In this document: one piece after another, positions 28,496-50,345 of the stretch
Position numbering within the stretch: position 1 is the stretch's first letter
How the letters are laid out: each line of letters opens with the position of its first letter
Origin: the human T2T-CHM13v2.0 reference genome, Homo sapiens
Assembly (NCBI RefSeq): GCF_009914755.1
Contig: NC_060940.1
Length of the DNA: 64,000 nucleotides
Strand: one strand, 5' to 3'
The notes under the pieces: generated by a model
Databases searched by the model: none
What the model saw: the letters and a program-made list of their open reading frames with translations, nothing else
What the model was told of the DNA's origin: nothing
Translations under genes and position numbers: made by a program

Positions 28496-30129
28496 CTAAG
28501 ACACGGCTACAAAACATGCTGTATGTGTTTCATGTTTATGTTTAACAAATTAGCACAATAAATGCACAGAAAATGCAACAAAATTTCATCAGCCCCAAAG
28601 CTGGCAACTTATCCTGATTCCAAGAATGGTTCCCCTGGGGAAATCCCTGCTTCTTGGAGCCTCAGTTTCTCTGTCTTTAAAATGGATGTGATGCCTCCAT
28701 GTACTGCTGTGTCACATGAGTGCATGGAGGTGAACCGGTTCATAAGCCCAAGGCCTCCACAAATCCCAGGGATTTTTCGTTGTTAACAGTTACATTCTTT
28801 CCCTCTGAGAAGGAGGATATATTTTTGCCAGTGGCCTGCCATGTCTGAAGCTCTTTCTGAGGATAGCAGAGAAGGGCTTGCTTCGTTCTTAGGCAAAAAG
28901 AATAAAAAAGAATTTAAAAAAAAAGAAAAAGAAAAAAAGAAAGAAAAAAGAAAAAATAGGGCAGTCAGATGATAAATTTTGTTTTTCTGGTCCCCAGTGA
29001 GCCAGAGGCCAAACACAGCACACGTTGTCTCTGAAAAGAAGAGGATGGACCAGCCTAAGAAGGTAAATGGGTCCTGGGCGGGATGCCAAAGGCGCAGGCA
29101 TAGTTTAGAGGAAGGAGGAAAAGGGCAAAAGGCCCACTGAGGAGGGAAGTCGGGTTGCAGGGTTGGGAAAAGCCAGGGGCACGTGACAGAGCTTAATCTT
29201 GATTGCTGGCACTCAAGAGGAATAAAAGATGGCGCAGCAGAAGCTGGCCAGGCAGCTGGATGATTCTGGAACTTGGAAGGCATAATGAGTGAGGTTTTGG
29301 ATAGAGTCTAGCGGCGTCCCTGGTTCAAGCACTGATTGGTCCCCAACCATGTCCACATCCTTGTGAAACTGTGGGGCAGGGCAAGGCAAGCCAGCTCAGG
29401 CTCTGCCCCAGTAGGAGAGGCAGGCAAAGAGACAGAGATACAAAACAACGTGTGGTTAAGCATTTGGAGGCTGGAAATGAGTTCTCCTGGGCAGGATGAG
29501 GGCAGATACCTGCGGTTTCTGGGCTAAGACGAACCTACAGGTAGCTGCAAATCTGAGATGTGCCCAGGTGTTCCATGCTGACGGCCTCCTTGTCTCCTGC
29601 AGAATCCAGGTGGGCATTTTTTACCTGCTCCCAATGCAAGGTCTGTCTGTGAGCATCTGTCAATTCTTTTAAAGTCCTACAATTGAAAGATGAAGAGCCG
29701 GGCTGTGCAGTGTGTGGTCTGGAGGGAGCCTGGCACCCTCTCTCCAGCTGCAGGGTGAGGTGTAGGACTTAGAGGGAAGCCAGGAGATGGCTCTGCTGGG
29801 GATGGTCAGGCTGTGGCCCCAGCAGCACTTGGCAGGGATGTTTGGATGGCTTAGTCCTGTTGGAGCCTTTTGCCCATTTCCATTAGAAACGGGGACTTCA
29901 AGTCTACGTTGGTGCATGAAGTTCATGCCAATGCACCCTGACATTTCTTCTCATCTCCTGGCACAAACTTGGCCCGTTTTGTACCCAGACAGGCACGTTT
30001 GAGGGCCTGTTTCCTTTGGCATGAAACTGGGGACACATGTGAGGAGAGGGGGGACCAGATTCTAGGCTGTTCCTGTCCTAGCATTGCAGGATTGAAGAGA
30101 AAGTGAATCTCACTAGCCAGCAAAGCAGA

Positions 30130-30530
30130 GGGTTTCAGAGGCATGCGGCCGGGGTGCCAGTCCCAACTCCACCACGCTGTGTGACCCTGGGCCTGTGACT
30201 TCCCTCCCCTATGCCCCAGTCTCCTCACCCCTAAACTTGCGGGTACAGCACCACCTACCTCGTGGGCTTTGGGGAAAGATTTGATGAGTTGGCACCTGCA
30301 AAGCATAGGTCCTGGTGTGTGCTTCACACTGAATGGGTGTGCTGTGTGTTTAATGTCTACACATGCTGTGTGTGCTTATATCACTGTTTTTCTGCATCCC
30401 AGTGCAATGTACTTTACCAGCATTGGCTCAGTTCACCCTCTTTGCGCACTGTCAAGTTGGCTCTGCTTTACAGATGGGGAAACTGAGGCTCAGAGACCTA
30501 AACGAGCAAGCCGAAAGCCACACAGCTAGT
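30130..30530. mobile_element. Two MIR fragments in opposite orientation
   Basis: gctgtgtgaccctgggc...ccccagtctcctca; tttacagatggggaaactgaggctcagaga. Confidence 0.7.
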
Positions 30531-30759
30531 AAACGGTTGTGTGATGTCAGTCTGCTGTGTCAAGCTGTGGCAGTGGCCCTGCCCCCATGTCATCCCCCCA
30601 GAGGAGCAGCCATCATCACCGGCCTCCTCCTCTGATTTGTGTTCACCCTGCTTCCTGGCTCCCAAGACGTGTTCCAGGGGACTTTCCTGAGTCATTGGGT
30701 CATTGAAGAGAAGAAAAACATTCAGCTGGACGCCTCCCACTCCCACTCCTGGCCCGCTT

Positions 30760-30930
30760 GACATGCACACACAGGCACACACACAGAAACACACAGGTGA
30801 ACTCATACACACATGCTCACACACAGGGTGCACATACATATATAACTATGCACATGTACACACACACATATAATCTAACAAATGCAGAATCATGCACATT
30901 CAGATACGCGCACACTCACACCTGCATATG
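30760..30930. repeat. Degenerate (CA)n
   Basis: CA/TA-rich low complexity. Confidence 0.8.
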
Positions 30931-32899
30931 TATGGTGCAATACCTCCTGGAGGATTCCGGCTCAGCCAAGAAAACCCTAGCTCTCTCTTTTGGTCTGGTT
31001 GGCCCCGTGATCCTTCTCCCTCAGACTCTGTGTGAACTCAGCACAGTGGCCCTCCCTGCCGCCCTGCAGTGTGCCCTGCAGTGCGGACAGGCGGCAGGAG
31101 AACCTCTTCATCCACTGGAAAGAGGAAGAGGCAACACACGTACACGGTCACCTATAGCATGCCAGAGCCCATGCCTGTGCCCAAATCCCTATTTATTTAA
31201 CAACCCCCATTGTACGGAGCAGAAAACCGAGGGGTGGTGTGCCAGGAAGTCCACCCAAGGCTCACACAGCTGGCAAGGGACAGAACAGGATGGAGACCCA
31301 GGTGTGTGGGACCAAGGCACTGAGCCAGGCCCCAGATCTCCAGTGAGCAAGACAGACCTAGCTCCTGCCCTTGAGAGGGAGCACCCAGGATTCCGGGGCG
31401 GGGCAGACAGGAGCAGGGGACGGAAAAATCAATAAAATCAATGGCAAACTCCTGCGCTGGGGAGCTGGGATGAGAAGCGCGGAACAGCACCTGCTCTAGA
31501 GAGGAAAGGGAGGCCTCTGAGGATGATGCTGTGACCATGGCCATACAGATGAGCCCAAAATGCATTTGAAGCAGAAGGGACAGCACGTGCCGAGCCCTAA
31601 GGAACCCATGTTTAACTCACCCGCTGACCTGCATGTCCCCAGCCGGGCAGTGTCTTACTAGCAACCTCTCGGTCTGTGTGGGACCTAATAGTCCCTCTTT
31701 AACTGTGCAAGGATGCAATTCAACAGACATTGTCCTTTAAACTTTTCCTAATCAGCCCTCCTCCTCTCTCCAGGTATTAAAAATGCCAGGAGCCGAGAAG
31801 CCCCCTGCCCCGCTCCCAACATTCCTTCAGGACAGTTTTGCTGACACAGCATTCCTCTGGGCCAGGGTGAAGGCCCAAAGTCCCAACCAATGATGATTTC
31901 CTGTTAACCCTTGGACTAAGGGTTGAGCCCTGGAATATCCCCCAGGGATTCCGGAGGCCTTCTTCTTGCATTTGTTTACAATGCATGGCCCTCTTCCTTG
32001 CCAAGAGGAAGCCCAGTTTTATTTACATTTCAGTGTCCCAGAGGGTGGAGGGGACCACCGGGCACCTTTGTCCCCAGGCTGATTCTGGGCTGCTGCTTGC
32101 AAATGAGGAAGCTCTAAACTGCCCAGAAGTCAGACACTAGTAGAATTTTGAAGCTGGAAGGGGTGCCATTTCACAGATGGGGAATGAGAGGTCTGGAGAT
32201 GCCTAGATTGGACCAGGGCCTGAGCCAGATCATCCGGGAGGATCCAGGGATCCTGGCCTTGTCCTGCCATGGACGGTCCCGTCCCCATCAGCAGACTGGC
32301 GACGTGGACCAGACGTTTGCCTCGCACGGCTACTCGCCCTGGTGGTCAAGAGTAGGGCCTGGAGCCCGACGTCCTGGGTCTGAATTCTGCTTAGCCCCTT
32401 TGGACGAAAACTTAACACTCAATGCCACTTCTTTCCTGTATGTGAAATGGGGCTGATCACCACAGTTAACCCTAAGCGCCTCGCACCGCAAGTCCCTCTG
32501 CTTGTTAAATAAATACAATGGATCTCTACACATGTACAATAAAGACACGGAAACAGTTAATCCCCTGCTGCAGCTCCTGTTGAAGGGAATAAAATCAGGA
32601 CCCAGAGAGGTTGATTCACTGACCTTGGGACACACAGGACCCTTTCTACCTCTGCTGGTGACCCAGTGACCCCTGTCGATGGTGGGAAGGGGCAGAGCAG
32701 GCCTCAGACTGTCCGCAGGATGATGCATTCACTAACGGGTTCTAGGAGACGGGGACGGCTCCTCTTTTCTCTCTCCAAAATTAGAACGCGGGGCCCTGAA
32801 TGGTATCCCCAACTCGGGCCTGTTCGGGACTGTAAATGGCTTTCTCGCTTGGTCCCCCCTTTTGAGAGGGTCGGACAACCCTGAACGAACCCGGCAGGG

Positions 32900-33421
32900 T
32901 GCCTGCATCTAGGCTGGGGCTGCCCTCACTGCAGCCCTGGGGTGGGGGGTTCCTCCGCCTCCAGGGGCGCCCGCAGCGTCCTTACCTGGCTCCTCCCGCG
33001 TCCTGATTGACCTTTACTTAAAGACCAGCTCCAGCCGCTGATGGGTTTCGGCGGGTCCCCCAGGAGACCCTTCAGACGGCTAGAGCCGGGCGCGCTGCAG
33101 AGAGCCCCTAATTGGGGCAATGAATCATCGCGCGCGGCTCCGGCTGGACACAAAATAGATAGAGGAGCCGGCCGCTATTGTGCGCAGTTTGGGACGCGGG
33201 GGGAGGCGGCGGCGGGCGGGAGGGAGGCAGGCTTGGAGGAGGAGGGCGGGGGGAGGGAGCGCGCGGGGAGGGATTCCCCCGCCCGCCGCGCGCCCGCCCT
33301 CCGCCCCTCCCCGCCCCTCCCGCCCGCCGCCGCCCCGCCCCCTCCTCCCCAATTAAATGACCCCACGCCTTGGCAGGCGCCGGAGCTCGCACATGCGGCT
33401 GCCGCTCCAGCCGCCCGGGCC

Positions 33422-33455
<34 letters not shown>

Positions 33456-34510
33456 GTTCCGGGCGCGCTCGCCGCGGCGCCGCCTCGGCCCGCGCCGCCG
33501 CCGGGGGGTGCTCGGCAGGCCCGGGGGGGCGCCGCTGCGAGGGGCCGTGCGCCCGCGCCCGCGCCGGCCGCCCGCCGCCAAACTTTGCGGCGCGCACACA
33601 TGCTCCAAGTTGGGCGCGGCGGCGGCGGCCTGGGCGGGAGCTGAGGGCGGCCCGGGGCGCGCGGGGGCCCGGGCGGGCGGCGCGGCGCGGCCATGAGCGG
33701 GCGGCCGGCCCCGGTCTCCCGCAAGCAGCGGCTCATGGCAGCCGTGGGCGAGCGGGCTGCGGGCGGCGCGCCGCTCTCCTGCTTCATCTGCGGCGGCGGC
33801 ATCGGGCGCGGCAAGGAGCTGAAGCTGCAGGTGAAGCAGCCGGCGGCGGGCGCGGGGACCCCGGCGCAGCCCTTCTTCCCGTTCCTGCAGCAGCAGGAGC
33901 CGGCGCCCGGCGCGCGCGAGCTGTCCCCGGCCGACGGCTGCGTGTTGGTGTGCGCCGTGTGCCGCTGCTTCCTGGGCGAGCAGTGGGCCGCCTTCGAGCG
34001 CGCCCGCACGCCGGTGGACAAGCGCATGTACTGGCTCAAGCGGCCCCACCAGTGCGACGCGGGCGCAGGCGGCCGCCGTGGCGGCGCCGGGGCCCCCCGC
34101 GAGTGGAACGTCGCCTACGCGCTGGGCAGCGCCACCGGCGACGACGACGAGGACGACGGTGGCGGCCCCCGGCTGCGCGGGGCCGCGGAGGAGACGCGAG
34201 ACTCCGACCTGTCGGAGCTGTCGGACACCGACCCCCTTTCCGAGCCCGACCCGCCCGCGCGGGACGCCGCCAGCCCCCACCAGGACGGGGCCCCAGGGCC
34301 AGGGCCTCGCGGGGGGCGCGGCCAGGAGTGGAGGCCGGCTCCGGGACCCGCTCCGGGACAGGGCGCAGAGGCCTCGGCGCAGGGGCGCGCGGAGGAGGAG
34401 GGGCTCCCCGCGAAGGCCCACGCGGATGGGGAGCCCAAGGCCGGGGTTAGGCGCCGGCGGAAGGGGGTTGGGAGGCACTGGGTTCCCGAGGCCCGGGCCA
34501 GCGTCCTGAG
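32900..34510. promoter_or_regulatory. CpG island promoter and 5' UTR with multiple GC boxes
   Basis: Extreme GC and CpG density, repeated GGGCGG/CCGCCC boxes at 33200-33345, no interspersed repeats; elevated CpG continues through the exon. Confidence 0.9.
33422..33454 (+). repeat. (CCG)11 trinucleotide repeat in promoter/5' leader
   Basis: Eleven uninterrupted CCG units read directly. Confidence 0.95.
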
Positions 34511-35975
34511 GAGCATTCAGGATCCCTGGCAAGGCCCTCTTGTCCAAGAGGCCCCTGCAGACGGCATGAAAGGGCCTCCCTCTGGCAGAGCCACTAAGAC
34601 CCTGGAGAGCAGGCCGCTGGGGGAGACCCTACGGGGCTTCTGCACCTCCGAGGACAGTGACATCAACATCACCAGTGGGGAAGAGGACCACAAGGAACAG
34701 CCTTTCCCAGGCGTCTGCAACCCCAAAGAGAAGAACAGTGGCCGTGTCCCCCGGGCTCTCCAGGACAGCCGGGCGGCACCAGCAGAAGGCCTTTGCTGCT
34801 ACATCTGCGGGGCCCCGCTGTCCCCGGCCTCGCACCACCAGGTCCACGTGCAGAAGCAGGAGAAGCTGGCTCAGGCCCCGTTCTTCCCCTTCCTGTGGCT
34901 GCACAGCCCGCCCCCAGGGGCACAGCCCATCAGCGAGGGCGGCAGTACCTTGGTGTGCGCCAGCTGCTTCTCCTCCCTCACGCAGCAGTGGCAGAGCTTC
35001 GAGCTGGCCAACGTGCCAGTCCTGCAGCGACTCTATGTGGTGCCCCTGGACAGCCACGCCCCCGGCATGGCCTCTAAGGGCAGGAGGCTCCCGAGGGAAG
35101 AGGGCCTGCCCTCCGGGGCCCTGCGAGAGGCCTGCTACCTCTGTGGGGAGGACTGTACCCCGGATGCCCGGGCGGTCCCCTCCAGGATCCTCAACGGCAA
35201 CGCCAGGAGCGCCATGCATTTCCCCTTCCTCAGCCTCCTGCCCTGCCCGCCCAACGCCCAGGGCCCCAACAAGCGCTGTGAAGTCCGCAGCTGCCCCAAG
35301 TGCTTCAGCGTCCTGGAGGATGTCTGGGCCCTGTACCGGGCCTGCCAGAACGAGGAGCTCATCACCTCCGTGCAGGGCTTCCTGGGCAGGTACCACCAGG
35401 CCTTCTCCGCCTCCGACCCTGCCCTCTCCGAGCTGCCGGCGTCGGCCCAGGGCGGCCCCGTGTCCATCTGCTACATCTGTGGGGCTGAGCTGGGCCCCGG
35501 GAAGGAGTTCCAGCTCAACGTGAACCCCGCCAGCCGCTTGGGCGAGAAGGAGCCCTTCTTCCCCTTCCTCACCGTGTACCCGCCTGCCCCTCGTGCCAGG
35601 CCTGTGGACTCCACCGGCCTGGTGGCTACCTGTGTGCTCTGCTACCATGACCTGCTGGCCCAGTGGCTGCAGCATGAGGCCCGCAGCTCCCACCACGCTG
35701 TCAGCGCCTGGTCCCGGCAGTACCAGGTGGAGACGTTCGTGTGCTTCTTTTGTCAGCAGGAGAAGAAACGGTGTCTGGGGCTGAAGTCCGTGCGGGTGGC
35801 CCGGCTGCCCCTGTTCCTATACACCCTGCGAGCAAGCCACAGCCTGTTGGTGGATGACGGACAGCAGCTGATCATCGGTGCTTGCGTGGAGTGTGGGACC
35901 CTGGTGTGTGCGGGCCAAGGGCTCACCCGCCAAGGACCCATGAGCTGGAGCTCCCCGGTGGCAGCAGCGACGAAG
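33693..35975 (+). CDS. GSE1: First coding exon (761 codons) of a spliced gene, encoding five Cys4 putative Zn-binding repeats; probably the N-terminal extension of a long GSE1 (genetic suppressor element 1) isoform
   Basis: Longest ORF in the window. ATG context GCGGCCATGA (G at -3) with an in-frame upstream TGA at 33642-33644. Strong C/G third-position bias. Internal protein repeats conserved at amino-acid level (CFICG/CYICG/CYLCG/CYICG/CFFC; PFFPFL x3 plus HFPFL). Ends at a consensus donor AAG|GTAAGC, after which coding character is lost. Coding status is near certain; the gene name comes from my recollection of the locus and is less certain. Confidence 0.8.
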
Positions 35976-35981
35976 GTAAGC
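35973..35981 (+). other. 5' splice donor of exon 1 (AAG|GTAAGC), phase 0; intron 1 continues past the window end
   Basis: Near-perfect U1 consensus exactly at a codon boundary (2283 nt from the ATG); composition shifts toward T/A immediately after. Confidence 0.85.
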
Positions 35982-38900
35982 AGCAGTTTTCATCTCATCT
36001 TAGACGCTTCCTCCAAAATCCATTCAGGGAAGGGAGAGATGTTTTCTGTTCCTCAGAAAAACTCTGAAGGAGGAGTTTTCACTGGTTCTGTGCGGGGTGT
36101 TCCGGGGGAGGTACCCTCCCTGAGTCACTGGGCTGGTGCTTGGTGGGTACGTTGGCCTGGCTGACCTTGGAGGCATGGGGCAGGGGTCAGAGGAGTGGGG
36201 ATCAGGAGTGGTCTTAGGGAAGAATAGGGCACTGCTGAGAACAGCAGGCACGGGCCTGAACTTGGGTGTGTTTGCAGTGGGATCTATCAAACAGAGGAAG
36301 TTCGGGGCATGTCTGTCATCCGCCTGATAACATTGGTAATTAGTCCAGCCGTGCGGGTCACAGAGAGGTCTCCGTGCTCACCCGGTTTGAAACACATCAG
36401 AGGTGGAAGTTCCTCTCCGTTCTAGCTCCCGTGTGGCTTGGCTTTTCCAGAGTTTTCCACCTAAGTTCACACTGTTCTTTTGAGACCGTGCTTGCTTTAC
36501 GGCGGAGGGAAATAGGGTTCCAGACATGGGGGTGTGGAATTTGAGGGACAGTGGCCTAAACAGACTTTTCCCCCAGCGGGAAGAGAGTCTTTCCTCTCTG
36601 CAAGTCAGCTGTGCAGGAGGCAGACGGGAGGCCTGGCACTCTCCCTGTTTATAAGGCGCCTGCCTTCCTGCTGCCCGCCCGCGAGGAGCCAGACGGGGCT
36701 CAGTTAATTTGGGATCCGGCTTTGCAAGGGACCAAGCAGGAACTGCCCCCGGTGGGTCTGGGGAGGTAGATGTAGGCGTCTGTGAGTGGCAGTCACCAAC
36801 CCGGCCACCGGGGCATGGATGCTCATTTCTGCCAAAGACAGTCAGTGCGACTTGTTTTAATCAAACGCCTGTAGTGGCAGCTGCTGGCCATGTGTGGGCA
36901 GAGGGACGTGTGGATGGGAAAGGTGGCGCTGTCGTGTTCAGAAAGGGTCATTCCACCCTTTGAAAGCTTCCTGATCCTGCCTCCCACCTGCACGTGTGGG
37001 GCACGGAGGTGGACTATCTGGGGGACATGTTCACTTACAGTGGCTGCACCCGGGAAGTGCGCTCTGCCATGATTTGCCCACCTCTCCCCCGATACGCGGC
37101 CCCTGTCTTCATGCTCTACTCAGATTTCCTTTTCTACTGATGACAGCTTTGGACTTTCAAGCTGTCTTTGTGGCTTTGGTGGGATGGTCTCTCGTTTTAA
37201 TTGGATGAGCACGTCGTCTCCCGTCACAGATGCTGAAGCTCTCCTCTTCGGCATATAGCAGTGCAGCCCCTGGGAGTCAGAAGAGCTGCAGTTCCCAAAA
37301 GGGCTGAAACTGGGAGAAGAGAACAAGTTTTGGAGCAAGACTGACCCCAGTTCATTTGTTCCTTACCATGGCGCTGCGAGGCCTTCTCATCTCATTTTAT
37401 AGATGAGTCAACCAAGACTCAGATAAGTCAGACAACACTCAGTCAGTAGGTATCTGAGGCAGATTTCGAAATTCTGCCCTTTCTCTTGCTAAGTACCTGT
37501 GAGTTAGTTTCTTATCCTGGTGGAATGTCAGTTTCCTTGGTTGAGAAGTGGAAACATACCACTTGCTTTGTAGGGACATGGTGAGAGTTCAATGGATTGG
37601 GGGAAATGTAAGTTCCCCCAGAGGGTCAGATGCTTGACATATAGTGGGACCCTCGTGTCCTCCACCCTGGTGCATAGGAGCAAATTCTTCTTGGATGTGG
37701 GTTGGTTCTGTGTGCGAGGTGCTGGCTTGCAGGCTGGGTGCCAGTTTTATACCTGGCAGTGGTGTTTCAAGGGGCAGTCAGAACTCTCTGCAAATCCTCA
37801 AACACAGGGTTTTGTGCAAAGTATCCAAATTCTGGTGTATTTTCTCATGTGGATTTGCTCACGTGTCAGGAGTTGATGGGATGCTGCCCGTCGGCCTTGA
37901 CTGATAAGAACGCCAGGAAACAAGAAGCCGCCGTTTCCCAGGCAGCTGGGAAGGGGGAGTGGACAGTAGTCTGGTGTGGACGGGAACGCAGGCTGGTGTC
38001 TGCCCAGAAGGGGTCAGCATGGGTTTGGTGAGGTTTCATGTGGTATGGATGTGTGCTCTGTTCCCTAGAACAAGTTAGTGCATTCACTCCTTATCATGGC
38101 TCTTGAGGCCTTCTTATATCATTTTATAGACGAGTCAACCAAGACTCAGAGAAGTCAGACGACACAAAGCCAGTGGGTATCTGAGGCGGGTTTTGAACCT
38201 GCTTCTGCTCCCTACGCCCTCTTCCACCAGCTGCCTGGAGGAGGTGGAGCTTGAGTCAAGCCTCAGAAAAGAGGTAGGATTTGTTGGAATGAGGCAGGCA
38301 AACAGGCCCAGAAGCAGGGGTGACCTGTTCAGCCTCCGTGGGCGGGAGGTGCCTGTTGGGGATGAGAGGAAATAAGGTTGGAGTGAACTCCAGGCCTTGA
38401 AATCAGGAATAGGAGGTTGGATTTGAAGTTGAAGGCTCAGGGGAGCAATAACAATTTCTTGAAAGAAAGTGGAACGGACTGAGAAGAGATCTGCTCAGGG
38501 CCCAGAGGTGGCAGCAATCCAGGTGGGTGGTGAGGCCGCTGGGGCAGGTCTGCCTACAGAGAGGACAGCTCTGATGGGTCTCAGGCTCCCCTGGACGGGA
38601 GGGAAAGGAGAAGCCTCAGCTCTCAGCTCCCAGGGAAGCACGATTGACAGCCGGGAGAATGCCGGAAATGCAGCCTTCTGGTCTTCCGTCCTCCCTCCCC
38701 CTCCTTCCCATTCATTCAACAAATATTTATGGAGCGCCAGCTCTGAGCCAGGCGCGGTTCCAGATGCTGGGGATCTGGTGGCAAGCACAGAGCCTCCAGT
38801 GTCATGGGGGAGGGGGACACACATGAGGAGTGGAGGGAAGGAGCCACTTCCAGCAGAGCAAAGTGCCGAGAAGTAGCCGAGCAGATTAAACTTAGGACCC

Positions 38901-39949
38901 AGTGCCAGGGTGGGCATGGGCAGCGAAGGTGACACTTGCAGGAGCTGGGAATGAGAGCTGGGGCTCCGGGCAGGGGAGAAGCCTGTGAGCCCCCTGGGGA
39001 GGGAGAGAGGGTGGAGGGGCTGTCCCCAAGCCCATTTCCTCATGCCAGCCCCCAAGATCTTGATCCTCACGTGCATCTTCCCATCTGTCTTTTGGGGGGT
39101 GGTTTGAGAATTTAGGTGGGATGAGGAGGGCAGTGGAAGTTAGCTGCGGGGAAGCCACTCAGCTGGGGACGTGGCATGTCCCAGAACCATGATCTCTGCT
39201 GCTTCCTGTGACTCCTCAGTTGTTCCCTATGATGTGTTCATGCGTTAGCGAATCAGCTTTAAAACACAAGAGGAAACATGAGAAAAATAAAGAGAAGAAA
39301 GAAAGAAGAGGAGGAGGGTGTCCCCTGCACCTTCTGCTTTGGATAGGATTTGCACTTTTCCCTCCAGCTGGGCCCCGGGTCCCCAGAGAGCACCATGCTC
39401 TGCAGGCACCTGACTCGTGCCTCCTTCGCCAGGGCTGTGTCTGGGGTGGCCTGGGGAGGGCTGAAGCCTGCTCTTCTGGGCTGGGCACCCCTGCCCCAAG
39501 GACGGACCCTTCCCTGCAAGCTTCCCAAGGAAGCTCTGTGAAACCCTGGAAGGACCCCGGGCTTGCCTTAAGACAAGCCTGGCTTCAATCTTCATGCTGC
39601 TGGGAGTCGGCTGTGTGATGTTGGGTAAGACTCTTGCCCTGTCTGGGCCTTGGAACCGAGTGAGCCGGCCTGGGTGAGAGCGCCTGGCTCGCAGTGGGGT
39701 TGCGGATGCGTTGACGCCCCCTTCCCCCCGCCCCCGTGAAGTGCTGCTGGCGCGACGCTGGGTTTCTGAGGTTGCAGCCTCTGCCTGCTGCCTTTCTGCT
39801 GGGATGGGGAACGGCTGTCCCTCCCTTCAGAGCTAGAAACAAGGCCAGCCAGGATGTTGGGGGCGGCATTTGGGGACGTGATAATGCGGGTGATAACCAT
39901 TATGGAGTGCTTCCCACCCTCCAGGAGGCGTGCACACTTCACCTGTATT

Positions 39950-40506
<557 letters not shown>

Positions 40507-43730: not shown

Positions 43731-46700
43731 CGTTGGGGGTTTTCAGCAGGCAAATGACGTGATAGGGCTTAGGTTTGGAAAAGTCATATTGGTGACTCCT
43801 TGAAGCCCTGTTTCATCACTTCTGCCTGCAGTCCATCCTCTTACTCCTGGTCTTCAGGCAGTGGATTTGTGTTTGAAGATGGCGATCGTTTTTGTTCTCC
43901 CTGGGATGAGGGGAGCTGTACTAAGAATTGAGAAGGGGTTTGCATTGGCTCTGGGGGCTTTTGCCTTGCTCCAGCCACAACCCTGGGCATCAGAAGCCTT
44001 GGGTTATGGCCCCAACACTCACAGCAGCCTTGGGCAAGATGTTCTACCCTGGCTGGGTCTCAGTTTTCCCCTCTGGAAAATGGGGGCAGATGGTAGATGA
44101 TAGACTATTAGCTGAGCCCTCAGCTCCTGCACAGCTGACAGTCGCTAACCATCTCGTCTTTCTACATGTGTTGGCGGGGGGCTGTGGGGCAGGGAAGACC
44201 TGGGCGGTTGGGGTCTGGCCTGGCTCTGTGAGCCCATGGCTCTCAGGTTCCCTGCCTGGGGTCTGGTTGCCCTGACTGCTGTGTTTTAAGCTCTGCTGCC
44301 TGGCCTGTCTGGCGTGGAGCCCTTGATTAAATCGGTTGCTGGATTGGGCTTCCCGCGAGAGGTGCAGAACCTCATTGGAGTGGCACAAAGGCCGGGGTTG
44401 GTATTCTGCCCTGCCAAGCCAGGGCCCGGGGCAGGTGCCTCTGGCTGCAGCTCTTTCCACTTGGCGAGAGTGGGCTCGGGAGAGGAGGCAGCCCAGGGCC
44501 CAAAGGCGGCCCCTCAAAGGTCACCCACCGAGGCCACGCTATCCTGCCCATCATTAGTGTCATTTGTTGGCACAGAAAGGGTATTTAGGTTCCGGCCCTC
44601 CACTCCCAAGCCCTCGGGCTCTGATGAGAGCTGCAAGGGGACGCCAGTGTCAGTGGCAGCAGCAGAGGGCATTGATAGCATGCGCCTGGTGCCAGCCAGT
44701 GTCCGAAGAGTTTTGCCTGCATTGCCCCACGTGACTGTCTCACTGTCTTATAAGTGGGCTTATTTGTTTTTATAGACAAGGCAATGGAGGCACAGAGAGG
44801 TTAAGTCACTTGCCCAAAGTCACACAGTGGGGAAGTGCCGGCGCCGGGATCCGCACCCAGGCTGCCTGGCTCCAGCGTCTGCACTCTGCCATGCTCATCA
44901 CACCCATCCTGAATGGGAAGGCAGGCTGGGAGGGAGATGAAGGTAGATGGGGTCAGGAAGCCTCCCTGGAGAAGGGGTATCCGATGAGTTCTTAGGATTT
45001 AACGAAGTGGCGAATGTAGAAAAGCTTCCTCTTCTGGAATTTACGTACCAGTGATGTCACCTTAAAAGGTCCTGATTTTCTTCTTTAAATGTGTGCCAGG
45101 GTGCTGCCTGCCAATGTATTATACTGTGGGAACCATTTCAACGTTTTAAGTCATTTTCAGATTGTGTCGTATTTTACATATAGAAAGAACATGTGTTTCA
45201 TGATGTTGAACTTGGAAAGCTTAGAGCCGGTGAATGCCGGGCCATGTGTCTGGTGTCAGCCCCAGCTTCCGCAGCTGCCCACAGGGTCCGCTGGCCCCGG
45301 GATCCTTCTGGGTCTCATCTGGGCTCCACGCTGACACCGGCTAACTTGGTGACCTTGGGCAGGGTGCCAGTTCCTCCCCTCCCTAAAGCCTTCCCATTTC
45401 TCCTTGGACCACAGAGGGGGCGTGAATGGCCCCATGGGCGGATGGTATCATTCCCGCTTTTCAGATAAGGAGGCCAAGGCTCAGAAACTTAAGAGAGTTC
45501 GGGGTGGAGGTGCCAGCCGTCATTGGCAGGGCTGGGAGGTGTGGGAGAGTGGCCAGTCCAATGCCACTGCCTCAGCCTTTCCCCTGCCCTGGAGTTCAGG
45601 GGTGCTTCTGGGAGGCGATGCAGCCCTGGTGGGGGCCTGGCTTCCACACGGCCCTGCCCCTGATTGAGCACAGGAGGCCGCCGTGCTCTCTCGCATCAGC
45701 TTTCAGAAAGGCTCTCAGTTCCGGAGGGAGAGGGTCAGAGGGCTGACCGCTGCTGCGGCGTTTTATTCACCTTTCCAGACCCATCAACCTAGTCTCCCGC
45801 TTCGGGTGGGAAGGTTTGCAGGCTAGGAGGCTTGTGTGGGGGAGTGACAGTGATAAGGGTGGCAGCTGAAAAGTGGCGTGGGGCCTCCACACTTCCAGAC
45901 GCGACAGGACTGGCCATGGGGCTGGGACGGGTCCTGGGGTCCAGACCCAGCAGCAAAGGGAGGCCAGGAGGCACCTGGATGGCAGCTGAGGGTAGGTTGA
46001 GGCCTGGATGTCCCGAGAGCATGGCGGGGCCTTGCCACAGCTGCAGCGCCAGCTCTGTGAATCTGCAGTCCCTTTGAGCTGGCGCGTCCTCCAGGCGTGC
46101 CCTTGCCCTTTGAGACGGACCGTCTCACGGCTGTACACTGTTCTTTCTCTTGTGCAATTGTACCCAGGAGCCTCTGGACAAGGGAGCCCCGGAACGTCCA
46201 GAATGTGGCTTCGTGCTCTGCTTCCAGGCTGCGCGGCATCCCCAGCAAGGCTGTTCACACCAAGCATGGGGGACGCACGGTGGACAGCGAGGGCTCCTGG
46301 GAAGCCCTCCCCCACCCTCCCCGCCCCCCGCTGCCAGGAGTCCGGGTAGTCTGGGCTCCTGTGGGGGGAGGAGGTGCCATCGTGGGAACAATACCCACCA
46401 TCAGCCTCGTACAGAAGGCCAGAATGTACCTGGTGGACCCCAGGGCGTGCAGAATGGCCTCTGGGTTCAGCCCTGTTGTCCAAGAAACCAGGCAGGCTCC
46501 AGAGGATGGGAGGAGGCTCGGGCCTGGCCTTCAGGTGGCCTCACGTGTGAGCCCCATGGTGAAAGGCAGCACCCAGACAAGGTGTCACTCCCCTGGCGGC
46601 CTGGTCCCTGCAGGGGGGATCGCTGCTTCTCCCATGCCTCAACCTCTTTCTCTTCCGGAAACTGCGTTTTCTTCCTGATTCGTAAGTGTTTGGGGTCAGT

Positions 46701-47425: not shown

Positions 47426-48719
47426 TGCCTGGAGGTGAATCTGGCAGGGCCCGTGTGCCAGCCTAGCTCTCACCTGTGCCACTGTTTCCTCTTGGCCGTA
47501 GGGGTGTCCGTCTTAAGACACAACTTGGCACAGACTCTGGAGTCCAGCTGGGCTGCACCAGGAAGGAGGTGGGCACAGTGGCTGGGGAGGAAAGGTACAG
47601 GGTGGGGTTGGAGAGGCTGGTGTTCCACAGCCAGGGCACCCAGACTCCTCCCTGCTCTGCCCTCACCCCTGTGGTCCTCTGGGTTCTCATCTGTGACCCC
47701 AGAGGGTCCCTTCTGATTTGGTGATCTGGCCGTCCTCCATGCCCTGGGGCCATTTGGACTCAGATAGATGTTTGCACTTGTCCTTCTCTGTTGTGTGACA
47801 CTTGGTAAGTCGACTGGCCTGTCTTAGGCTTGGCTGTAAAGCTGGGACAGGAATGATGGCTCACCTACGTGGATGCCCCCCTTTACCTCAGAGGTGATTA
47901 TCCCCATTTTACAGATGTACAGGCTGAGGCTCAGAGAGGTGGAGACACGTGCCAAGGTCAGAGCTGGGGAGCAGCAGAGCTGACATGGGATCCCTGTGTG
48001 TCTGACCCAAAGTCTGGCTCTCAGATACCACCCTTTGCCTCCTTTCTAGAACTTTCTTCACAGAGATGTCATGAGGGTGAGACAAAGCTGTTGACGTGTT
48101 CTGCACAGACCAAGCTCCCAGTAAAAACTCGGTAATTGTTCATATTTGTTTCTGTGGCCTTACTTATCATTCCCCAGAGAGTCTTCAGTCTCCTCTTGAA
48201 TCCTTCCAGGGATGGCGAACTCACTCCCTCAGAAGCAAGGCGTCACCTGTGATGTGTCAGGAAGGAATGACAGGCTTCTGAGGATCCTCTGCAGCTCTGA
48301 GAATTCTGCCTGGGGAGTTCTGGGGAACAGGAAGAGTCTTGGGAAGGGCTTCTGGACCCCATTTGTGACTCAGGCCTGTCTTTTTGTTGTTTCTGGTTCT
48401 GGTTTATTACCTTGTCTCAGAACCAATGCCTGTGGCTCCCCAGTGACTCTGCTGGTGGCATCTTCTGATGTCTCTACTCCCCCTTCCCCTGCATGCCTGG
48501 CAAATTCTTGATCTTGTATTCCCTAGGGGAAAAGAGGGGAATCTGCAAAGTCATGTTTTCCCTCAGGATGTGGAGAGAGAAATTTCTAACCTCAGTGATG
48601 CCTGCTAAATTATACTTAAGAAGGGGGCCAGGCACTGGCATATTTGCTAAGCATTCCCCATATGCTTCCCTCTTTCCCCCATGAGAGCTCCTTTTCTCTA
48701 AAATACTGCATGGGAGGGA

Positions 48720-49350
48720 TTATTATCCCTACTTTAATAGAGGCAATTAAAGCTATGCATGTTCCTCTAAGCACTGCTTTAGCTGCACCCCACACTTTGT
48801 GATAAGTCATTTCTCATTCTCATCTCATTTGAAATATTTTTCAATTTCCCTTGTGTTTTTTTTCTTTGACCTATGGATTATTTAGAAGTATGTTGCTTAA
48901 TTTCCAAACATTGGACTATCTTAATATCTTATGGTTATTGATTTCTAATTTAATTCTGTGAACAGAGAAGGTACTCTGTATGGCTTTAATCCTTTTATAT
49001 TTAAGTGTACGCTCTTGAAGAAGGGACCACAAGCTCTTGAAGAGGATATGGAAACAGCAGTATTTGGTTCTCTACATATTAATTAACTTGAAGAGATTGG
49101 TGCTTGGTAGCAGTGTTCCAATTGTCTAGGTCATTAACTTTTTTTGTGTGTGTCTATCAGTTGCTAAGAAAAGAGTGCTGATTTCTACTACAGTTTGGAT
49201 TTGTCTTTTTGTCCCTTTAGTTTTGTCCAGTCTTTCATCGTGGATTTGGCACATTCGTGGTTGTTTTGTCTTTCGGATGAATCGGCGCTGTTTCCACTAT
49301 GATGCAGCTCCTCCATCTCTGGCAGCATCTTTGTCTTGGCACCTCTTTTA
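48720..49350 (-). mobile_element. Old L1 ORF2-region fragments
   Basis: AT-rich; ttcctctaagcactgctttagctgca, ttatttagaagtatgttg. Confidence 0.7.
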
Positions 49351-50345
49351 TCTGAATTATTCACATCTGGACACTGAGGTCTCTGAGGTTCGGAGAGGGA
49401 AAGTGACTTGCCCAAGGCCACACAGGTGTCAGCTCCAGGGGCAGAGTGCTCCCTTCTCAGCCCAGCTGCACACAGGTTTTCTCTACTCCAGCAGTCGCTT
49501 TGGGGCCATGGGTCTGAGAGATGCTCCTTCCCAGTGACTTTCTGGTTTCATGATTGCCAGGTGGCCAGAGCTGTGTCCCCGCCTGCCCTTGGCAGAGGAC
49601 CTCCCAGCAGCCCCAGAAGTCACCTCCATGCAGAGCGCAGCATCTGGCCTGCAGCCTGCAGAGAGCTGGGCTGAGCATGCTTGGAATACCCACTGGAAAC
49701 TTCTCACTAAGCTCTAGCTCTGGAGCTCCTGGCGCCATCTCCCTGTTTGGTGAGATGGTTCTGAGCATATTGGCCAGATCTTCCCAGGACTCACATGTCA
49801 TAAGAATTTCTCTGGATAGCAGGAGAAACGTCCCCCGTCTCTGGCTCCCCTGGTCTGTGTGGGCTTTTGGGAGCCCCAGCCAAATCCACTTCCTGGTGCT
49901 TCGCCCTCGCCAGGCTGTGGCCTGAAGTGCCTCAGGGGCTCCGTGCTGGCAGAAGGCCTCCTGCCCATGGTCTGAACCCTCCCTGGGGCATTCTGGGAAA
50001 CTCTGGAGGGCCCTGCGGGGGCTGGGAGGGCCGTTGTCTAGGAGATGTTTATGGGGGAAATTGACACAGTGAGGGGCATCTCTGCCGAGGGCGCGGAGGC
50101 CTGAGCAGGGTGATGGGTGGGTTCGGTCAGCAGTTTCACGGGCCCTACTGTGTGCCAGATGAGAGTAGATGGAAGCCAGTGTGAGAGACCACGATGGGCC
50201 GGGCAGCGACATCTGACCATAGTCACCACTGATACTGTTCTATGTCCCCCTAGGCTTGAGAAGATGCTGCCTTGGGAGACTGACCCTCCACCCATCGTGA
50301 GATTTTGTCCTGATTTCACATTTCACATACATTAACATGTAAAAC

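Follow-up and report, generated by a model that had tools for sequence, protein, structure and literature searches.

What does the long cysteine-rich reading frame in the first exon of the long GSE1 gene models encode, and to which proteins is it related? The exon (33680–35975, + strand), which is annotated in human in Gnomon models only, lies in a 64,000-nucleotide stretch of human chromosome 16 (assembly T2T-CHM13v2.0, contig NC_060940.1), called the window here. On translation, its coding part (33693–35975, +) comprises 761 codons, is free of stops, and reaches the exon end in phase 0. It encodes five units, R1 to R5, each with two CxxC pairs, and it can be said with great confidence that these units are real, ancient and strongly constrained, predicted to be folded, joined to the GSE1 body in gene models from sharks to mammals and in those of molluscs and arthropods, and common to the Drosophila protein Plexus (Px). 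The usual 1217-aa human GSE1, which arises from downstream promoters, is without this array. The exon adds five conserved, probably zinc-binding modules to GSE1, offers a testable hypothesis for how the complexes of GSE1 are targeted, and supplies a sequence link between vertebrate GSE1 and Drosophila Plexus.

The cysteine module array

Ten CxxC pairs (knuckles) begin at exon residues 30, 87, 369, 422, 481, 534, 593, 647, 684, and 731, corresponding to window positions 33780, 33951, 34797, 34956, 35133, 35292, 35469, 35631, 35742, and 35883, and the paired knuckles are separated by 53, 49, 49, 50, and 43 residues in R1 to R5. The translation and the pattern count match exactly the five-copy CxxC module, with the same residues, coordinates, and spacers, that had been claimed in an earlier note on this DNA made from the sequence alone. 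Residue shuffles contained 1.29 ± 1.10 CxxC (maximum 7), and 0 of 20,000 reached the ten observed. The alignment of R1–R4 has 15 invariant columns, including the four cysteines, the glycine after the first knuckle, FPFL, a leucine, and a tryptophan. PFFPFL occurs three times (residues 60, 396, and 621), while R3 has HFPFL (residue 509) and R5 has RLPLFL at the equivalent place.

R5 is the divergent member of the array. As the earlier note had described it, R5 is degenerate: it has no QW motif and is missed by the general unit hidden Markov model (HMM) even at a domain E ≤ 1. A further HMM drew solely on last units, taken from 12 proteins of invertebrates and amphioxus, making the test non-circular. 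This HMM finds all five human units with E from 1e-15 to 1e-5 (search space of one sequence), including R5 (residues 681–736; 15.3 bits, E = 9e-7) with both CxxC pairs aligned. The degeneracy of R5 is common to all vertebrates and is itself highly conserved. In the human genome, six-frame searches with a 4-row profile and an 18-row cross-phylum profile found no second copy of the module, a result that is not absolute; these searches recovered R1–R4 only, and the next best matches had E of 0.25 and 4.

Constraint and predicted fold

All 20 knuckle cysteines, including those of R5, are 97–100% conserved in a 107-row homolog alignment, in which C121, H404, and H652 are kept at 94–97%, the conservation track stands at 0.55–0.80 in the units vs 0.09–0.32 in the linker, and human shares 77–89% identity with other mammals. 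The AlphaFold2 model based on this alignment has a mean predicted local distance difference test (pLDDT) score of 69.8, with values of about 90 in the units and below 50 at residues 118–363. The order of elements predicted for each unit is strands around the first CxxC, a short FPFL helix, a strand, and a long helix starting from the second CxxC. DSSP analysis of the model places strands on both sides of C30/C33, C369/C372, and C593/C596, and the long helices begin at residues 88, 423, 535, 648, and 732, beside the second CxxC. In the model, the arrangement of the ligands is treble-clef-like, with one knuckle in a hairpin and the other at a helix N-terminus. The invariant Cys4 set and the confidently predicted fold argue for zinc sites, and it is very likely that each unit holds one structural zinc. 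The net charges of the units range from −5 to +6 (0 for human R2 and −1 for R4), and the conserved aromatic residues, as placed in the model, look like core rather than surface.

Ahead of the units, the N-terminal motif SRKQRLMAA (residues 9–17; 33717–33743, +) is kept in shark, sturgeon, turtle, and coelacanth and is predicted to form a helix (residues 10–17). R1 (residues 29–118; 33777–34046, +) contains C30/C33, PFFPFL, C87/C90, the LxxQW helix (residues 88–103), and a KRMYWLKRP tail; its unit HMM E is 1.5e-29, its cysteines are 97–99% conserved, and its pLDDT is about 91–94. It is followed by a disordered acidic linker (residues 119–367; 34047–34793, +), with pLDDT mostly below 50 and a net charge of −10. 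Two Ser/acidic motifs, DSDLSELSD (34200–34226, +) and DINITS (34659–34676, +), are conserved amid the variable linker and, as a guess, may be sites of phosphorylation or of the SUMO-interaction type. R2 (residues 368–452; 34794–35048, +) contains C369/C372, PFFPFL, C422/C425, and the LxxQW helix (residues 423–438), with a unit HMM E of 2.4e-33 and four cysteines that are 100% conserved.

The four knuckle cysteines of R3, R4, and R5 are likewise 100% conserved. R3 (residues 480–572; 35130–35408, +) contains C481/C484, HFPFL, C534/C537, an LxxxW helix, and extra C-terminal helices, with helices predicted at residues 535–551 and 560–571; its unit HMM E is 6.3e-23, and two further cysteines, C488 and C518, are conserved at 85–86%. 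R4 (residues 592–680; 35466–35732, +) contains C593/C596, PFFPFL, C647/C650, and the LxxQW helix (residues 648–664), with a unit HMM E of 9e-31 and H652 conserved at 96%. R5 (residues 681–745; 35733–35927, +) directly abuts R4 and contains C684/C687, RLPLFL, and C731/C734, with a pLDDT of 87–94 and a helix at residues 732–743.

Search for a known family or fold

No Pfam-A family was detected on the human exon at E ≤ 1. Among nine invertebrate homologs, the sole family was PF12540 (DUF3736), located in the C-terminal part of four of the nine proteins, and among 18 isolated units no family was found in more than two. In particular, there was no Pfam match to C2H2, PHD, RING, LIM, MYM/FCS, or THAP on the exon, the nine invertebrate proteins, or the 18 units, in agreement with the earlier statement that the pattern is not that of C2H2, PHD, RING, or LIM. 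Isolated sub-threshold rows were zf-C3HC4_3 (E = 0.087) and zf-FLZ (E = 0.18), each in one of the 18 units. Searches of PDB sequences with unit profiles gave nothing better than E = 0.25. A Foldseek search of the PDB with the whole 761-aa exon model, a query that weakens the test, returned 93 matches at E ≤ 10, none of them at E ≤ 0.001; the top rows were an HNH nickase (4h9d, E = 1.4), small zinc-binding ribosomal proteins, and a plant PHD-like domain. In the ESM Atlas, the nearest clusters of an amphioxus homolog (P0078) are unnamed arthropod clusters. The structural rows there all have template modeling (TM) scores by query of at most 0.23, and a ZNF276 row (0.15/0.19) and HNH rows (TM by target of 0.44–0.49) can be taken as leads only.

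The weak leads at the top of the structural searches, HNH nucleases and zinc-ribbon ribosomal proteins, likewise draw their ligands from a knuckle and a helix N-terminus. In contrast, the GSE1 units have no catalytic His/Asn signature and have a much longer spacer with its own FPFL helix. The N-terminus of SINHCAF/FAM60A, with its CxxC...CxxC-LLVKRW pattern and a tryptophan 3–4 residues into the helix after the second CxxC, is superficially alike. This protein was considered as a possible relative and rejected, with an hhalign probability of 0.25% over 14 aligned columns and no PF15396 on the exon, the invertebrate proteins, or the units.

As judged against Pfam and the PDB, these results support the module being an uncatalogued Cys4 family specific to GSE1/Plexus; InterPro, CDD, SMART, and PANTHER lay outside the searches and may hold a model. 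The proposal of an unnamed zinc-binding family made in the earlier note thus holds against Pfam-A, PDB sequences, and Foldseek (E ≤ 0.001), with the zinc predicted from the Cys4 set and the fold. The same note had named a known domain family, disorder, and confinement to primates as outcomes that would refute its proposal; no known family was matched, the units are predicted to be ordered, and the homologs extend far beyond primates. A literature text search for "PFFPFL" matched only an unrelated 1907 scan, and a search for DUF3736/KIAA0182/GSE1 gave no DUF3736 paper among the matches listed. A Pfam/InterPro model of the unit would correct many split "uncharacterized LOC" annotations in vertebrate genomes.

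Homologs, architecture, and ancestry

Three protein searches were made, which left out 6146, 6034, and 6333 candidates known from samples alone. With the human exon as the query, 81 proteins were matched among 1854 scored candidates, from mammals, reptiles, birds, amphibians, coelacanth, gar, sturgeon, teleosts, sharks, amphioxus (E = 1e-72), and tick (E = 4e-41). A profile led by a 1241-aa shark protein matched 120 proteins, among them single proteins of tick, scorpion, snail, and limpet that hold both the array and PF12540. With a profile built from invertebrate sequences, 41 proteins were matched, including those of horseshoe crabs, a spider, a millipede, crustaceans, and many insects, and PF12540 is also present on array proteins of horseshoe crabs, spider, millipede, and beetles. 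The shark-led profile also recovered long forms of 1700–2124 aa with both the Cys array and PF12540, in sharks, coelacanth, turtles, emu, wallaby, pika, whale, and frogs. PF12540 was confirmed in the pika long GSE1 (P0093, E = 2e-70) and in a cricket px protein (Anabrus, P0143, E = 7e-18). All 162 stored homologs have at least one unit (domain E ≤ 1e-5), 88 having four and 34 having six; a crinoid is among the homologs with units, and the source names include "genetic suppressor element 1," "px," and "plexus." No cnidarian, sponge, or nematode match turned up in the word-based search, which is uninformative on these groups.

In the long forms of shark, coelacanth, emu, wallaby, pika, and whale, the same next exon follows, and after it comes the canonical MSHEPKSPSLG exon. 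In human, this next shared exon (chr16:91423656–91423836), 186 kb away, is open and homologous to that of the long forms. Together, the Gnomon models and the open exon 2 imply that the array and the GSE1 body would be joined in one human protein.

A tree of 50 units from nine species (83 usable columns, with many weak forks) groups the units by position and not by species. Vertebrate R3 groups with unit 3 of molluscs and unit 4 of arthropods and the crinoid, R4 with the penultimate units, and R5 with the last unit of amphioxus. The position-wise grouping across phyla supports a bilaterian ancestor in which an array of six units would already have been joined to the GSE1 body; vertebrates and molluscs would each have lost one unit. 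The idea of the earlier note that the long form is ancestral is supported by the presence of both halves in vertebrates and invertebrates, the grouping of units by position, and the shared downstream exons. The third unit of arthropods is without the QW helix motif.

Relationship to Drosophila Plexus

The invertebrate profile matched two Drosophila proteins, one of 2052 aa (E = 7e-136) and one of 2113 aa (E = 4e-133). UniRef names the second of these Plexus, and several of the other insect matches bear the name px or plexus in NCBI or UniRef. According to the unit HMM, each of the two carries six units with the CxxC...FFPFL...CxxC...LxxQW signature. Plexus is homologous to the GSE1 array, with six units in the fly vs five in human, where the last is degenerate; in Drosophila Plexus, an insert interrupts unit 4, and no QW helix is present in unit 3. 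The Plexus-like character suggested in the earlier note is borne out by these Drosophila matches (E of the order of 1e-133 or better), with the reservation about PF12540 given below.

The pairwise BLASTP link runs through the units only: when Drosophila Px was compared with the pika long GSE1, all 15 high-scoring segment pairs (E ≤ 1) fell inside the Cys arrays, the best being Px unit 1 vs R1 (E = 3e-14). Outside the units, only the SFAAALRTLAKQA motif and an RE/KE-rich stretch are common to Drosophila Px and GSE1; the common motif downstream of the units reads SFAAALR[KT]LAKQA. HMMs of the DUF3736 block and the C-terminal block of other animals score below zero on Drosophila Px. PF12540 is kept in the px proteins of cricket, beetle, wasp, and planthopper.

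The Cys-rich motifs of Plexus were noticed in flies in 1999 (Matakatsu et al., as cited in PMC13322080 and PMC8864742). In PMC8864742, plexus is listed without a direct human homolog, which is explained by the usual human GSE1 lacking the only easily alignable part. The literature searches for plexus and GSE1 found no paper linking the two in the text retrieved. The long form would redefine the full GSE1 protein and tie it to a classical fly gene.

Alternative explanations

The units may be read as ZAD-type (zf-AD) dimerization domains, in which case the array would make GSE1/Plexus self-associate, as the ZADs of insect C2H2 proteins do. The ZAD monomer is described as a two-strand sheet, a short helix, and a long C-terminal helix with four invariant Cys, classed as a treble clef (PMC7913770), and the element order predicted for the GSE1 units equals this order. 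ZADs (PF07776; Grauzone 1PZW, CG2712) are also alike in the CxxC...CxxC pattern, with about 45–50 residues between the pairs and the second pair leading into a long amphipathic helix, and in their size of about 75–90 aa; the likeness of a short helix followed by a long C-terminal helix carrying the second Cys pair concerns predicted secondary structure only. In hhalign with a 628-unit profile, the zf-AD-like stretch of PDE4DIP was aligned with a probability of 28.6% and both CxxC pairs in register, but the ZAD of ZNF276 reached only 1.7%. PF07776 gave no row on the human exon, the nine invertebrate proteins, or the 18 units, yet a scan of the human genome with this model recovers two positive controls, ZNF276 at 40.8 bits and PDE4DIP at 35.5 bits. 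No ZAD structure is among the 50 Foldseek matches listed from the whole 761-aa query, all 93 matches having E > 1. Moreover, the GSE1 units occur as five or six in tandem without a C2H2 finger, whereas ZADs are single and N-terminal to C2H2 arrays; the GSE1 module family is bilaterian-wide, whereas ZADs are concentrated in arthropods; and the PFFPFL and QW signatures are missing from the two aligned human ZAD-like sequences (ZNF276 and PDE4DIP). ZAD membership is therefore not supported and a dimerizing array is improbable: of the earlier ZAD-like suggestion, the Cys pattern and the predicted secondary-structure order stand, and family membership does not. Tandem arrays of zinc modules with long-kept positional identity are typical of DNA-binding factors, and sequence-specific nucleic-acid-binding zinc fingers that take GSE1/Plexus directly to DNA are a somewhat better, if still unlikely, alternative. 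Units of different phyla do group by position, the conserved tail of R1, KRMYWLKRP, is basic, and the weak top Foldseek and Atlas leads (HNH nucleases and zinc-ribbon ribosomal proteins) contact nucleic acids. However, the units are near neutral, they have no significant similarity to DNA-binding fingers in Pfam or the PDB, and the conserved aromatics, as placed in the model, seem to belong to the core rather than to a surface.

Two further explanations concern the gene rather than the fold. The exon could represent a separate gene or a stand-alone short isoform of about 800–1000 aa, made of Cys units only and unconnected with the human GSE1 body. Many species do annotate an "uncharacterized LOC" or hypothetical protein of 640–920 aa, the human model XM_047446670 ends inside the window, and the next shared exon and the canonical promoter are 186 and 443 kb away, respectively. 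On the other hand, the tails of the short vertebrate forms past the exon junction are mutually unrelated, each of human, camel, lemur, goat, marmot, and desman having an entirely different one, whereas the long forms from shark to whale share both the following exon and the canonical exon; single-gene models of invertebrates hold both halves, and human exon 2 is open and homologous. A separate gene is thus not a likely explanation. Least probable is that the exon is an unexpressed or decaying relic in human and that only the short GSE1 matters, although the exon is in no curated RefSeq transcript, the GSE1 papers, as far as their text could be searched by term, are silent on a Cys-rich region or a long form, and R5 is degenerate. 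Against a relic, the frame is unbroken over its 761 codons and retains all 20 Cys, human is 77–89% identical to other mammals, the donor is of consensus type, the exon lies in a CpG island with a divergent long non-coding RNA (lncRNA) start, and the degeneracy of R5 is vertebrate-wide and highly conserved.

Proposed function of the array

GSE1 is reported to form a complex with HDAC1/CoREST (10.1101/2023.03.13.532402) and, according to literature abstracts, is a recurrent subunit of LSD1-CoREST-HDAC complexes. In flies, the loss of Lsd1 or CoRest turns intervein cells into vein and produces ectopic veins (PMC7601384; PMC7145674), and the loss of functional plexus is linked to ectopic wing veins (PMC13322080). 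Plexus is a classical wing-vein repressor, and its loss phenotype, as described in these sources, matches that of Lsd1 and CoRest.

The proposal is that this exon provides the N-terminal half that the GSE1/Plexus corepressor had ancestrally: a row of compact modules, each about 80 residues long, with five in human and six in the ancestor. Each module would bind one structural zinc through the two cysteines of a beta-hairpin knuckle and the two of the CxxC that opens the long helix, and the short FPFL helix would pack on the L/W/F stripe of the long helix to form a small hydrophobic core. The positional identities kept since the bilaterian ancestor and the non-basic character of the units make it most likely that the array serves as protein-interaction surfaces; these would be non-equivalent, with different partners for each unit. 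The array may anchor the LSD1-CoREST-HDAC1/2 complex, which the GSE1 body holds, at selected chromatin sites or on certain transcription factors, and Plexus may repress vein-promoting genes in this way in flies. Taken as a whole, this account of the array anatomy, the zinc sites, and a partner-targeting arm is considered reasonably probable. The targeting role itself is put forward tentatively. More speculative still, and rather doubtful at present, is the wider view of a distinct, as yet unnamed zinc-finger family with one gene per genome and six positionally conserved units for different partners, in which the long, promoter-specific GSE1 isoform would be the developmental targeting subunit of LSD1-CoREST-HDAC complexes and the true functional counterpart of Plexus.

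Several observations weigh against this account. The pTM (predicted TM score) of the whole model is only 0.49, and the near-neutral charge of the units speaks only weakly against DNA binding. No PF12540 was detected at E ≤ 0.1 in either Drosophila Px protein (P0160 and P0161). In the literature retrieved, no paper was found showing Px bound to CoRest or Lsd1; "plexus," "CG4444," and "GSE1" have no occurrence in the main text of the dCoREST interactome paper (PMC7145674). The annotation of many species gives the exon an entry of its own, as an "uncharacterized LOC" or hypothetical protein, and no curated RefSeq transcript contains it in human. Three of the long Gnomon models, XM_054379874/5/6, have their first base at 33749, which is downstream of the conserved ATG (33693), and their annotated coding sequence starts at M112 (34026–34028), which omits unit R1. 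This truncated start looks like a start-site artifact, because the N-terminus MS..SRKQRLMAA is kept from sharks to human.

Promoter, gene models, and neighboring features

The first exon of the RefSeq "select" transcript NM_014615.5 (chr16:91678537) lies about 443 kb downstream of the long-form exon. The latter begins in a CpG-island promoter region (33000–34600; no strand assigned) that is recognized by GC content, CpG, and annotation and is common to the GSE1 long form and the divergent lncRNA LOC105371382, whose annotated first exon (32986–33197, −) starts from the same island. The GC content is 0.71–0.86 per 400-base window across the promoter region and 0.77 over 33000–34600, with a CpG observed/expected ratio of 0.97. 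Just upstream of the long-form start, the island contains G-rich and C-rich tandem arrays (33196–33350) and a perfect (CCG)11 (33422–33455). DNA tandem repeats were considered as a source of the protein repeats and rejected; such arrays are confined to the promoter (33196–33455).

At the exon end, the sequence AAG|gtaagc provides a consensus 5′ splice site (35976–35981, +). Past this donor, the frame stays open for 62 more codons to 36164, giving an open reading frame of 823 aa, so intron retention would add a tail and not an immediate stop. The model XM_047446670 (isoform X21, 1003 aa) ends within the window via exons 46168–46681 and 47502–49831, with alternative 3′ coding exons at 46168–46681 and 47502–47716. 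Nothing corresponding to its tail occurs in the short forms from camel, lemur, goat, marmot, and desman, all of which differ in their tails.

In the human genome, the zf-AD model also scored above the curated cut-off at the N-terminus of PDE4DIP and at the pseudogene PDE4DIPP2 (chr1:120571167–120571376 and chr1:145619581–145619790). An Rfam scan of 30000–40000 in the window gave no family. The long-form first exon sits between CIBAR2, which is presumably the former FAM92B, and the canonical GSE1 exons. This interval corresponds to the mouse Gse1–Fam92b "gene desert," which, according to a study using p300 chromatin immunoprecipitation sequencing, is among the most enhancer-dense regions in E14.5 cortex (PMC3757057), and those enhancers may therefore serve the long-form promoter.

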